Positions 942-45,090 of a stretch of 50,987 nucleotides of DNA are shown here, piece by piece; position 1 is the stretch's first letter, and each line of letters starts with the position of its first letter. The notes under the pieces are model-generated. The model was not told the origin of the DNA. It made no database searches and saw only the letters and a program-made list of their open reading frames with translations. Source of the DNA: Octopus sinensis (taxonomy: Eukaryota); assembly GCF_006345805.1 (NCBI RefSeq), contig NW_021834348.1, positions 1-50,987 on the forward strand, written 5' to 3'. Both the position numbers and the translations under genes were made by a program.

Positions 942-2059
942 ATTCGAGTTCTTGGATTCATTGCTGTGGTCAGCATCTTCTTTCTACTGTTTGCCTGGAA
1001 GCAATATTCTGTGAATAAAGAATATACAGGGACAACATTAAACAAACACAACCAAAAGTTTATAAATAATTCTAAGGAATTTCCAAATAATCAAGTGCAT
1101 CATACAAATAACAAAACTGTAAGCAAAGAGAAACAGGAATTGGTTCAGTTAAACAACAAAACTAAATATATTATTTTTTACTGTGTTAATAATATAGAGT
1201 GTGGCGGTTGGGGAGATAGACAGCATGGAATAGTCTCTGTATATTTAATGGCACAGGCCATGGGTCGTCGTTTTGGTATCATTATTTCAAAACCTTGTAA
1301 TTTTGCAAAATATCTTCAACCAAACAAAATTAACTGGACAATTGACCCAAAAGAGTTGCATGGCCTAAAAAGTCGTCACCTCCGTTTGACTCGAGATAAA
1401 GGGTACATATCTGCTTTACGATCAGTAGACTTAGAAAGACGCCACCCTCAAAATGTCCTCTATGTGACAACAAATCAAATCTATTTTCACACCTTAATAG
1501 AGAATCCTCGCTACAAAAAACAACTTCTTTGGTCATCACAAATGCCATATGGAAATGTATTTGCTAAAATAATGAATTTAATGTTTCGATTCAATGATCA
1601 TTTTCAAGAAGCGATTGACAAATTCTTTGAAGTCAATATCCCCAACCCAAATATGCATTTGGTGTGTGCTCAGATTCGAATTGGACGGAACCCCACAATG
1701 CCACATGATGACTGAAGGATGTCAATGTCAAGTGTTCAATCTCTCTGGAACTTCTTAAGTAAATACAAAAACACCAGCAAGTACAAAATGTTTGTGACAA
1801 CAGACTCAGAAGAGGTACAGAAGATAGCTTTAAAAAAATTTTCTCCTCAAATCGTGGAAATGTGAAAAATAGGTGTGAAGGTTTAAGGAAGGTCATTATG
1901 GACCAACATATTCTGACTAAATGTGATACGTTGATAATAAGCCGAAGTAATTTTGGTGAAAATGCTATGATGATGAGCCAAAAAGACAACAAAGTGTATT
2001 ATTTTAAAGAAGGAAATATAACAAGGATCGACAAAAAAAGATTTTTTCGTAACAGGTAA
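942..2059 (+). pseudogene. Fucosyltransferase-like (GT-B, alpha1,2/alpha1,6/O-FucT superfamily) exon, copy A, disrupted
   Basis: Signal anchor IRVLGFIAVVSIFFLLFAW, motif GGWGDRQHGIVSVYLMA, motif I VCAQIRIG, motif II FVTTDSE, motif III ILTKCDTLIISRSNFG. In-frame TGA at 1713-1715; 42-nt deletion plus 2-nt insertion near 1855 versus copy C. Confidence 0.8.
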
Positions 2060-2329
2060 AATACTTGGTTGTGAGACAGGATTTTTTTGACACCCAGAAT
2101 CTGAAAGTGACATCCATGTATCATCATCATGTCAAGATCTTAAGATACTGGATGCATAGAATTTCATTGGTCTTTCAATAAAACAGCTTATGAGGAATAA
2201 GGTATAACATACAAACATACATAGCAATTGATTTTCCTTCAAAACCAGAATGTTTTCTTGAAATTCTACTGAAGAACTATTAAAAATCTTCAAATTTCTA
2301 TAGGCAAATTATATCATTTACATATGCCC

Positions 2330-2408
2330 ACGGGCATATAGTGTAGGGGTTTTGAGCATGAGCTATTAACCCCAAGATTCCAAGTTCAATTCTAGGCAGT
2401 GACCTGAG
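2330..2408 (+). mobile_element. tRNA-like SINE head with (AAT)n tail
   Basis: A-box-like TAGTGTAGGGG and B-box-like AAGTTCAATTC, followed directly by the (AAT)n array. Marks the end of copy A homology (~2318). Confidence 0.55.
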
Positions 2409-2583
2409 TAATAATAATAATAATAATAATGATATAATAATAATAATAATAATAATGATAATATAATAATGATAATAATAATAATAATAATGATACTAAT
2501 AATAATAATAATGATAATAATAATAATGATGATGATAATAATAATAATAATAATAATAATAATAATAATAATATAATAATAAT
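2409..2583. repeat. (AAT)n/(GAT) microsatellite
   Basis: Direct reading. Confidence 0.97.
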
Positions 2584-41640: not shown

Positions 41641-41792
41641 AAGAAGGTTTGAAAATGCAATTTCTAAAAGATGTTTATTTACTTTACCAGTTTCACTCTT
41701 TGGAAGAAGATTGTCAAAAGTAACATGTAGAAGTTTGGTTGCGTTAATTATTGGTTGTTACAAAATGCTACATTACATATATACAGTCTTTG

Positions 41793-42917
41793 GTAACACG
41801 GACATGTTAAGGACATAAGAAAGTTTAACAAGTTCCTCAAAATATTGGGCACAAAAGATTACAACATAAATAATCGTTCTCAAGAATATGTTAAAGATAG
41901 TTTCCAGAAGGAATTATTAAAAAGTTCAGTGGGATATTGGTATTGTATCTGTATATTCAAACATGCACAGAATATTATATATACATTCTTTGGTGACAAG
42001 AGCATGTTAAGAACATAAGAAAGTTTAACAAGTTCATTGAAATATTGGGCACAAAAGATTACAGTAAATATATTATACGTTCTCAAGATAATTTCCAGAA
42101 GGAATTATTAAAAAGTTCAGTGGGATATTGGTATACATGCACAGAATATTATGAGTTCAAAAAGGTTTACATTATAATAGTAGGGAAGCTAAAACTGATC
42201 TGTCCACCATGTTAACATAAAAGAATATTATCTCTTTCAAGGGACACTGTAGGTGTGTTTGGGTGGGGGGAAGGAGGAGTAATATGGAACTGAAAAGAAT
42301 TTCTCCCATATGTCTCTCCTTCAAGCATCAATGATTTGGGGGATTGGCTTTAGAGGTCAGGATGGTTTCAATGTGTGTGTCTTTGTGTGTGTGTGTATAT
42401 AGATATGTGGTGTGAATAGATGTGTCTGTGTGTTTGTAAAATCTGGTAGGATGGTGTGTGTATATGTGTGCCCGTTTGTCAACCATGTGTGTGATTGTCT
42501 TGGTGTTGTGTATGTGTGTGTATGTATGTGTGTGCGATTGGCATTTGGCATGGTGCTGCATGTGTATGTGTGTGTGTATATGTGTGTCTGTATGGAGGTC
42601 AAAATGGTGTGAGCGTGTGTCTTTGTGTGTGTGTATATATATATATATGTATACATGTGTTTGTGTGTGTGTGTGGACTGTTTTTCATTGGTCCCAGGGT
42701 CCATTGTGGTGTAAATAGATGTGTGTTTTTTTTTATTTGGTACGATGTGTATGTATATGTGTGCCCGTTTGTGTGTGTGTGTGTGTGTATGTGTGTGGTT
42801 AATGTTTGTTAGTGTGTTGCGTGTGCATTAGTGTGTATGTGTATGTTCTAATCTTTTGTGCCCAATATTTTAAGGAATGTGTTAAACTTTCTTATGTCCT
42901 TAACATGTCCCTGTTAC
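41793..42917. mobile_element. Foldback/TIR-like element with ~70-bp inverted ends and ~200-bp internal tandem
   Basis: 41793-41866 is the reverse complement of 42848-42917; direct copy at ~42003-42062; (TG)-rich interior. Confidence 0.5.
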
Positions 42918-43922
42918 AAATGTCGGTTCACAAATATCAAAATGTTTGACTAGGGTCTTGTTGATTATCTATCACTAGGGTGAAAACAAATTATGGTTAA
43001 CAATGTAGGGAATTATCCAACTGCAATTGATCTAGGTAGTAGAATGTCTGGATATGGTCTAATACATTGTCTATTACTAAGGTAAGACCAAATTATGGTT
43101 AACCAAAGTAGGGAATTAGCTAGCATACAAGAACGATTTGAATTAAAATGCTGGCATTAATGGGTCGTAAGTATTCTTATAAACAACAGAATGTCTGATG
43201 GTAGTCTAATTTTAACAATCATTTTTCCATGTTTGCATGGGGTGAGCAAATTTACCATGGCAGATTTTCTACGACTGGGTGCCCATCCTGTCACCAACCC
43301 TTATCTGTTTCAGTTTAGTATTTCTCCATATTCAGACATATTGGTTTTAAATTATGGTAGAGGGCAGGCCTTTCTGAGGGGAGGGGGAACTTTGATGCAT
43401 CAACCCCAGTACATGACTGGTACTTATTTTATTGACTCGGAAAGGATTATGGTTAAAGTGAACGTCGGCAGAATTTGAGCTCAGAGTGTAAAGACGGACA
43501 AAATACCGCTAAGCATTTTGTCTGGCATGCTAACAGTTCTGCCAGCTCAGCATCTTCCCATGGTCAGACAGATTTTCACACAACACTGGAAACGAAGAAG
43601 GATATTCATTTACAATAATCATACACTGTCAAGATAAGGAGACATAAACATGCACACACCCACACTCATGCATAGTATTAATAGAATAGAAGACAAGTAA
43701 GCTGTAGTTGAAGAGCCTTGCCCTAGGTGCCATGCAGTGGGACTGAACCTGAAACTTTGTGGTTGAGAGGCAAACTCCTTAGCCATACAGCCATGCCTGT
43801 ACCTATAAGCTAGTAAAAACTGAAAAACTAAAAATTGCAGTAGAAGACTTTTTTTCTATTTGTTTATGGTATTTTATTACAAAGTTGTCATATTTTCACT
43901 TATTTCTTTTTATCATTTCTAG

Positions 43923-45090
43923 ATTCGAGTTCTTGGATTCATTGCTGTGGTCAGCATCTTCTTTCTACTGTTTGCCTGGAAGCAATATTCTGTGAATAAA
44001 GAATATACAGGGACAACATTAAACAAACAAACCAAAAGTTTATAAATAATTCTAAGGAATTTCCAAATAATCAAGTGCATCATATAAATAAGAAAACTGT
44101 AAGCAAAAAGAAACAGGAATTGGTTCAGTTAAACAACAAAACTAAATATATATTTTTTACTGTGTTGATCATAGAGGTTGTGGAGGTTGGGGAGATAGAC
44201 AGCATGGAATAATTTCTATATATTTAATGGCACAGGCCATGGGTCGTCGTTTTGGCATCATTATTTCAAGACTTTGTAATTTTACTAATTATCTTCAACC
44301 AAACAAAATTAACTGGACAATTGACCCAAAAGAGTTGCATGGCCTAAGAAGTCGTCACCTTCATTTGGTTGACAACAATACGTACATTTCCTCTTTACAA
44401 TCAGCAGACTTAGAAATGCTTTACCCTGAAGATGTCCTCTATCTGACAACAAATCGAATCTATTTTCATGCCTTGAAACGGAATCCTCGCTACAAAGAAC
44501 AACTGCATTGGGCATCAAAAATGTCATATGGAAATTTATTTGCTAAAATGATGAATTTATTGTTTCGCTTCAGCGATCATTTACAGGAAAAATTTGACAA
44601 ATTCTTTGAAGTCAATATCCCCAGGCCAGATATACATCTGGTGTGTGCTCAGATTCGAATGGGACAGAACCCTAGTGTTCCAAGAGATTGCCCAAGGAAT
44701 TCAATGTCAAGTATTCAGATTATCTGGAACTTGTTAAATAAGTACAAAATATTTGTGACAACAGACTCAGAAGTGGTACAGGCGATAGCTTTTAAAAAAT
44801 TTTCTCCTCAAATTGTGTACACATCAGGGGGAATAATGCATATGGATCGGCCACGTAAGGAGATGAAAAACAAGTGTGATGGTGTAAGGAAGTCGCTTAT
44901 GGACCAATATATTCTGAGTGAATGTGATACGTTGATAATAAGCCGAAGTGGTTTTGGTGAAAATGCTATGATGATGAGACAAAGAGAAAACAACCTGTTT
45001 TATTTTAAACATGGAGAAATACAGCAAATCAACAAAGAAAAAGTTTCTACCTGGTGGCCAAAAAAATGGTGTGGGGGAATTATATCTTGA
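43923..45090 (+). pseudogene. Fucosyltransferase-like exon, copy C (C-terminal 287 aa open)
   Basis: Two 1-nt deletions (~44029, ~44150) in the stem region. ORF 44227-45090 holds VCAQIRMG, FVTTDSE, IMHMD and DQYILSECDTLIISRSGFG. AATAAA at ~45177. Confidence 0.8.

Follow-up and report, generated by a model that had tools for sequence, protein, structure and literature searches.

The window analysed here, which is the whole of the unplaced contig VCDQ01004624.1 (50,987 bp) of Octopus sinensis (assembly GCA_006345805.1), carries three copies (A, B and C) of a two-exon gene for a membrane-anchored protein with the motifs of the GT-B fucosyltransferase superfamily. Family profile searches and Foldseek comparisons both lead to solved enzymes of this superfamily, and we therefore consider the family to be an uncharacterised branch of it that lies about equally far from the glycosyltransferase (GT) families GT23 and GT37, with a probability of roughly 0.72 for this reading as a whole. 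A previous sequence-only reading of the same DNA had noticed three homologous exons, each with a signal anchor, GGWGDR, CAQIR, FVTTDSE and CDTLIISRS.FG, and all of these were found again, at 85-96% DNA identity among the copies. On scanning the window for motifs in six frames, GGWGDR was located at 1203-1220 (+), 21861-21878 (-) and 44182-44199 (+), CAQIR at 1665-1679 (+), 21402-21416 (-) and 44644-44658 (+), FVTTDSE at 1791-1811 (+), 21274-21294 (-) and 44752-44772 (+), and CDTLIISRS at 1922-1948 (+), 21098-21124 (-) and 44923-44949 (+). Over about 1.6 kb, flanks of about 200 bp included, B and C are about 96% identical and A is 85-87% identical to B or C, a likeness far beyond chance.

The large exon 2 of copy A lies at 942-2059 (+), that of copy B at 20973-22139 (-) and that of copy C at 43923-45090 (+), and every one of them starts directly behind TTTCATCATTTCTAG. 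The limits 942-45090 are exact, 942 being the first base of A exon 2 behind its TTTCTAG acceptor and 45090 the end of the stop codon of C. The motifs had earlier been placed in one exon of about 1.15 kb. An exon of about 1.17 kb does carry them, but it has no ATG upstream of the anchor and no copy reads through; the start codon and 11 codons are in a separate exon 1 of 33 nucleotides. For copy B this exon is at 25647-25679 (-), encodes MKNCQGNSFYS and has a GTAAGT donor next to it, the intron being about 3.5 kb long. Upstream of copy C an exon 1 is present at 38305-38337 (+), encoding MKNCPRIGFHP and again followed by GTAAGT. These peptides match the RefSeq N-termini of LOC118761686 (P0018) and LOC118767629 (P0015) in the first case and of LOC118767630 (P0017) in the second, while exon 1 of copy A would fall to the left of position 1. 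The gene present in three copies is thus made of a 33-nucleotide exon 1 with the ATG, an intron of 3.5-5.6 kb and an exon 2 of 1.17 kb. On the chromosome, RefSeq skips C and joins the exon 1 upstream of it to the second exon of LOC118767630, which is outside the window, some 30 kb downstream. It may be noted that the two exon 1 peptides differ through a compensated pair of 1-nucleotide indels in otherwise similar DNA, and that in the RefSeq isoform X2 of LOC118767629, which has the peptide MKNCQGNSFYS, translation is annotated to begin 141 kb upstream on the chromosome. Retrogenes, or cargo borne by transposable elements, were considered as well and rejected, since every unit comes with an exon 1, a GT-AG intron and duplicated flanks of its own.

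From its sequence the product would be a type II membrane protein with a short cytoplasmic tail, a single signal-anchor helix, a disordered stem of about 60 residues and a luminal domain of about 310 residues. The AlphaFold2 model of the intact LOC118767629 protein (P0016) has a mean predicted local distance difference test score of 79.5, with values of 85-96 over residues 90-390, a helix at residues 11-41 and a disordered stem at 37-82. The luminal domain is predicted to adopt the GT-B fold of the fucosyltransferase superfamily, and its six near-invariant cysteines and many N-x-S/T sites would fit a luminal location. Foldseek matched the model to AtFUT1 (8e-13), NodZ (2e-11), FUT8 (2e-10) and POFUT2 (5e-6). 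The 14 best matches are all AtFUT1, POFUT2 appears from rank 48 down, and the 50 matches listed are fucosyltransferases alone, with a sequence identity of 12-17% to the solved enzymes. The GT-B fold on which the sequence-only reading had staked its assignment is therefore what the model predicts.

A composite of B and C, which the same reading had proposed for profile and structure searches, found no Pfam family, nor did the intact octopus proteins, and phmmer of the composite against PDB gave nothing meaningful. The solved fucosyltransferases were reached only when family profiles were used in sequence searches and, in structure searches, with the P0016 model. A profile of 14 sequences (A2) gave AtFUT4 at 5e-7, AtFUT1 at 1.5e-3, FUT8 at 0.06 and NodZ at 0.24, and a broader one of 54 sequences (A3) gave FUT8 at 1.5e-9, AtFUT4 at 7.7e-8, NodZ at 1.3e-5 and AtFUT1 at 0.017. 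Among the 54 diverse members themselves, weak Pfam matches were seen to XG_FTase (8 of 54), FUT8_N_cat (8 of 54), NodZ (8 of 54) and O-FucT (1 of 54). The motif I Arg, motif II and motif III occur in the superfamily order and are aligned by HMMER with donor-site residues of AtFUT4, AtFUT1 and FUT8, so that the earlier statement of a motif order common to the superfamily is borne out. Motifs I-III of the GT-B fucosyltransferase superfamily (GT11/23/37/65/68) were reportedly set out by Martinez-Duncker et al. in 2003. The failure to assign the copies to FUT8, POFUT1/2 or FUT1/2 was also repeated here, the octopus proteins having no Pfam match and their relatives only sub-threshold or partial ones (XG_FTase, FUT8_N_cat, NodZ, GT11, O-FucT).

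The family might instead be a divergent subgroup of GT23 (FUT8/NodZ), which would make its members alpha-1,6-fucosyltransferases. The broad profile has FUT8 as its best match and covers NodZ over almost its full length, UniProt gives members from O. bimaculoides and Biomphalaria the automatic name 'GT23 domain-containing protein', and the weak matches to FUT8_N_cat and to NodZ, in 8 of the 54 members each, point the same way. The likeness also extends to the predicted GT-B fold, to the type II membrane topology of FUT8, and to the donor site, where the Gly-rich loop near the N-terminus and the positions of Arg, TD, D and S align with FUT8. However, all Pfam matches of this kind remain under the gathering cut-offs, the best relatives reaching 21 against 27.6 bits for FUT8_N_cat (PF19745) and 11.4 against 28.3 bits for NodZ (PF05830). 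Motif I of the family is QIR[IM]G with a single Arg, as opposed to HVRR in GT23 (HVRRTDK in FUT8). Whereas FUT8 has 575 residues with a coiled coil and a C-terminal SH3 domain, the octopus proteins have about 400 residues, end about 35 residues past motif III and contain neither an SH3 domain nor a coiled coil. The narrower profile and Foldseek also both place GT37 first, and we regard membership of GT23 as unlikely.

A placement in GT37 would make the family an animal counterpart of the plant alpha-1,2-fucosyltransferases that act on galactose or arabinose of glycans, namely the xyloglucan enzyme AtFUT1 and the arabinogalactan-protein enzymes FUT4 and FUT6. The top structural matches belong here (template modelling score about 0.52 with the disordered stem included), since Foldseek's 14 best are all AtFUT1, and the best solved relative of profile A2 is AtFUT4, aligned from the GLGNR loop through motif III. 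Plant GLGNR resembles CGGWGDR, the plant IQ[VI]R[VI]F resembles the single-Arg motif I (QIR), and S(R)STFG resembles SRSxFG. Two distant members even pass the PF03254 cut-off of 23.4 with 26.6 and 24.8 bits. Yet the PF03254 matches span just 33-70 N-terminal residues of a 475-position model and are seen neither in the octopus proteins nor in 46 of the 54 members, the broader profile favours FUT8, and identity to the octopus family is 14-17%. Nor do they have the additional C-terminal region with which AtFUT1 binds its acceptor, because the family proteins stop so soon after motif III. GT37 is moreover described as plant-specific (PMC3355507, PMC7900004), whereas the octopus family was found in molluscs and annelids only. 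A true GT37 identity is accordingly improbable in our estimate.

The remaining families of the superfamily, GT11, GT65 and GT68, share with the octopus proteins the order of the three motifs, and POFUT2 is among the structural matches (5e-6). In the case of GT11 (FUT1/FUT2 and the oyster CgFUT1/CgFUT2), one family member reaches 14.9 bits against the 23.9 bits of Glyco_transf_11, and HVRRGD is absent. For GT65/GT68, that is the soluble endoplasmic reticulum proteins POFUT1/POFUT2, the PF10250 match is weak and confined to 1 of 54 members, and the octopus proteins have an N-terminal signal anchor instead of a cleaved signal. The characterised mollusc alpha-1,2-fucosyltransferase CgFUT2 has the GT11 motif VHVRRGD and was picked by homology to human FUT2, and the cloned mollusc alpha-1,2-fucosyltransferases described in the literature searched are of the GT11 type only (PMC11522050). 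Orthology of the octopus genes to CgFUT2 is ruled out by its GT11 type.

The donor site can be followed residue by residue. In the FUT8 ternary complex, Arg365 contacts the beta-phosphate and the fucose ring oxygen, Asp453 contacts the guanosine, and the backbone of the Gly-rich loop holds the diphosphate (PMC7033129). On aligning the family, CGGWGDR pairs with FUT8 G-Y220-G221-C222 and plant GLGNR, the Arg of CAQIR (QIR) with FUT8 HVR(R365), the TD of FVTTDSE with T408/D409, the Asp of LDQ with D453, and the SRSxFG Ser with the FSS(Q) segment containing Ser469/Gln470. Across the family, R257, D298, D344 and S359 (numbered as in P0016) are invariant or conserved to 90% or more. Judged by this alignment with FUT8, AtFUT1 and AtFUT4, the GGWGDR loop and the SRSxFG Ser would hold the diphosphate, the CAQIR Arg would bind the beta-phosphate and the fucose ring oxygen, and the TD of FVTTDSE together with the Asp of LDQ would hold the guanosine. 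On the strength of these donor-site positions, the protein is predicted to be a type II Golgi transferase, inverting and metal-independent, that would move L-fucose from guanosine diphosphate (GDP)-beta-L-fucose to a Golgi glycan or protein. For the catalytic base our guess would be the conserved Asp ten residues past the Arg.

Some points weigh against this reading. The octopus proteins themselves, as seen above, do not match any Pfam family. Lys369 of FUT8 and its catalytic base Glu373 are without a clearly aligned counterpart and fall on non-conserved positions of the family, and both donor and acceptor are deduced from remote homology alone, at 12-17% identity to the solved enzymes. LOC118767645 and LOC118767630, two chromosomal paralogues annotated as intact, both have GGWADR in place of GGWGDR, along with changes at near-invariant positions (R120H, F282L/W). 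On comparing them (L001 20350-21516 for LOC118767645 and L004 39176-40336 for LOC118767630), we obtained a ratio of nonsynonymous to synonymous substitution rates (dN/dS) of 1.75-1.85 (Nd 61, Sd 8), for which the one-sided test of dN/dS > 1 is not significant (p ~0.06). The recent array thus evolves without detectable purifying selection, be it through relaxation or through diversification. Taken with the GGWADR and near-invariant changes, a dN/dS of about 1.8 means that the recent array may be decaying as a whole.

The same observations bear on whether the true donor is something other than GDP-fucose, or the proteins have no enzyme activity. Relatives with the O-fucosyltransferase fold include the plant GT106 rhamnosyltransferases, the identity to solved fucosyltransferases is as low as stated, the catalytic base is not identifiable from the alignment, and the recent octopus paralogues show the high dN/dS. 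However, the GDP contacts of FUT8 (Arg365, Thr408/Asp409, Asp453, the Ser469 stretch and the Gly-rich loop) match invariant or near-invariant positions of the family, and every significant solved relative is a GDP-fucose enzyme. We hence give little credence to another donor or to a loss of activity, and retain an uncharacterised fucosyltransferase branch as the preferred reading.

The family is by no means confined to Octopus. An exhaustive profile search returned 415 representatives (at 50% identity) when E was held to 1e-30 or less and 1739 when it was relaxed to 1e-10, and every named cluster that was looked up is from a mollusc or annelid and is called 'uncharacterized' or 'GT23 domain-containing'. 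The named genera are Octopus, Argonauta, Haliotis, Patella, Aplysia, Littorina, Gigantopelta, Batillaria, Biomphalaria, Ylistrum, Liolophura and Owenia, which spread over cephalopods, gastropods, bivalves, chitons and annelids (Owenia); no further taxa came from a final search for homologues with profile A3. The notion of a lineage-expanded family therefore applies to the local array, which is a recent expansion, but not to the family itself, which is spread through molluscs and annelids. In the literature on GT37- or GT23-like families in animals, molluscs and cephalopods, we found no description of the family of the octopus array, and it is already present in the databases as hypothetical proteins, though Pfam has no model for it. 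From the profile and model comparisons, no characterised enzyme appears to be orthologous to it.

The window had been read as a three-copy cluster, which comparison with the chromosome shows not to be self-contained. Window positions 28322-50987 are 99.81% identical to CM016881.1 14,467,659-14,490,341, the alignment containing 16 substitutions and 7 indel events. The distance from the ATG of C to the stop of B is 23,255 bp in the window, and the corresponding distance on the chromosome, to the end of LOC118767629, is 23,264 bp. From the near-identical alignment and this matching spacing, it follows that the contig duplicates the chromosomal segment, being a second, 99.8%-identical representation of CM016881.1 around 14.47-14.49 Mb and probably a haplotig of it. 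The substitutions bunch in two short patches, at window 33998-34247 and 37938-38223, and such patchy divergence could come from gene conversion between haplotypes or between repeats. What the window shows is a redundant slice of an array of at least five family copies across about 210 kb of CM016881.1, three of which are annotated as intact, in a region present at least four times at 94-97% identity. The intact ones are LOC118767645 (P0001; 400 residues, about 14.406 Mb, B-type as defined below), LOC118767629 (P0015/P0016; 400 residues, at the position of B) and LOC118767630 (P0017; 399 residues, B-type, with exon 2 at about 14.507 Mb). The counterpart of copy C lies within the intron of LOC118767630 and is without RefSeq annotation. 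LOC118767632 (P0040), at about 14.617 Mb, is a 194-residue A-type fragment, itself truncated. It is ruled out as an allele of copy A, as it is about 130 kb away and on the opposite strand, and represents a further A-type copy. The octopus also has a conserved single-copy paralogue, LOC115215651.

None of the three window copies (0 of 3) has an intact open reading frame (ORF), the motifs of A and B being split among reading frames and the membrane anchor of C being out of frame with its catalytic part. Copy A is interrupted by an in-frame TGA at 1713-1715. It has also lost 40 nucleotides at the junction 1852/1853, a deletion that takes out the H..D stretch, invariant in the family, and causes a frameshift. 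Because of this nonsense codon and the lost invariant motif, copy A is certainly a true pseudogene. It is 98% identical to the chromosomal LOC118767632, and its catalytic core resembles O. bimaculoides LOC128250609. Copy C carries two 1-nucleotide deletions in the stem (44029/44030 and 44150/44151), an in-frame deletion of 15-18 nucleotides at 44746/44747 and a divergent C-terminal tail, which leaves a catalytic ORF of 287 residues at 44227-45090. Copy C together with 7 kb around it is identical in the contig and on CM016881.1, and since its lesions are thus the same in both, it is probably a young pseudogene.

Copy B, which is the truncated 294-residue LOC118761686 (P0018) of RefSeq, is of another kind. 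It has 1-nucleotide deletions at 21300/21299, 21220/21219, 21098/21097 and 21029/21028 and a 1-nucleotide insertion near 20982, all five within 320 bp and in runs of A or G, with almost no substitutions. When compared at the protein level with its chromosomal counterpart, its translated pieces are nearly identical to the intact LOC118767629 protein (P0016). These frameshifts, and perhaps those of C, may be consensus errors of long reads in a repeat that short reads could not polish, in which case the window would hold one or two functional genes. The clustering in A/G runs and the near identity of the pieces to an intact protein speak for this, as does the excess of indels over substitutions, which would be unusual for real decay, and the region, as noted, occurs in at least four copies of 94-97% identity. 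But elsewhere the contig is not generally error-ridden, with just five 1-nucleotide indels against the chromosome in the 22.7 kb aligned, and the two stem deletions of C are identical in both representations and outside long homopolymers. Four stem substitutions between copy B and the LOC118767629 protein (I/S, N/K, F/S and E/K) further suggest a distinct haplotype. We place the consensus-error explanation, with its one or two functional genes, slightly below an even chance; for the breaks of copy B taken by themselves, the odds are about even that they are either consensus error or a distinct, possibly null, haplotype.

The copies fall into two types of paralogue, A-type (A and LOC118767632) and B-type (B, C, LOC118767645 and LOC118767630). 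On comparing window 753-2318 with 20731-22336 and 43732-45309, the types were found to be 97-99% identical in the final 200 bp of the intron, in the part that codes for the stem and in the 3′ flank, whereas their catalytic cores are about 82% identical. This mosaic would indicate gene conversion at the exon ends or else a replacement of the core. Between the A-type and B-type catalytic cores, dN/dS is about 0.6. The homogenised ends with differing catalytic cores would fit a birth-and-death array undergoing gene conversion. Birth-and-death in a locus rich in transposable elements had been suggested from the letters of the window, and the non-long terminal repeat (non-LTR) and LTR elements between the copies, along with the dead copies, agree with it.

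Copies B and C stand head-to-head within an inverted segmental duplication. Its left arm, which holds B, is at 17764-23126 (-) and pairs with the right arm at 42927-50987 (+), which holds C and reaches the end of the contig; the arms are about 96% identical over 4.4 kb, with further blocks. Another inverted pair, 25367-26257 aligned with 38621-37777, holds both exon 1s. Between A and B there is a non-LTR retrotransposon with APE endonuclease and reverse transcriptase ORFs at 5514-8375 (-) and a reverse transcriptase fragment of a second one at 13901-15699 (-). A non-LTR endonuclease ORF occupies 31384-32826 (+) in the spacer between the two exon 1s, and an RNase H fragment of an LTR retrotransposon is found downstream of C at 48939-49706 (-). 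Upstream of the endonuclease ORF of the long interspersed nuclear element, 8684-9256 (-) is an ORF in which a run of about 30 Gln, encoded by a CAG/TGC repeat at 9180-9236, precedes a Pro/Thr-rich stretch; it may be ORF1 of the element or a chance ORF across a microsatellite. In the intron just upstream of A exon 2, a tandem array of a 59-nucleotide unit (about 7 units) lies at 400-817 (+). The unit starts with GCCATGCAGTGGGACTGAACCTGAAACTTTGTGG, and about one unit is present at the equivalent place in B and C, so the array grew in A only. Downstream of A, three long AAT/TAA microsatellites (2409-2585, 3439-3656 and 4509-4688) frame a direct duplication of 1.07 kb (2409-3615 and 3471-4688, 98% identical). 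Scans of the window for tRNA genes and Rfam families gave no matches.

Many unusual fucosylated structures occur on mollusc glycans, but the enzymes that make them have seldom been cloned, those of oyster GT11 being among the first (PMC11522050). A family situated between GT23 and the supposedly plant-specific GT37 is a candidate for some of the fucosylation activities of molluscs, and it bears on how the fucosyltransferase superfamily has diversified. A bolder proposal is that it is a lophotrochozoan-restricted sister to GT23 and GT37 at the level of a CAZy family, making one of the mollusc- or annelid-specific linkages of fucose or another 6-deoxyhexose, with the octopus array diversifying its acceptor specificity under positive selection instead of simply decaying, in keeping with a dN/dS above 1 and with catalytic cores that diverge between homogenised gene ends; we offer this tentatively, as something that has perhaps one chance in a handful of being right. 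The window itself adds little to this, being a redundant contig with broken copies; what it chiefly offers is a view of a young tandem array shaped by gene conversion, inverted duplication and decay.

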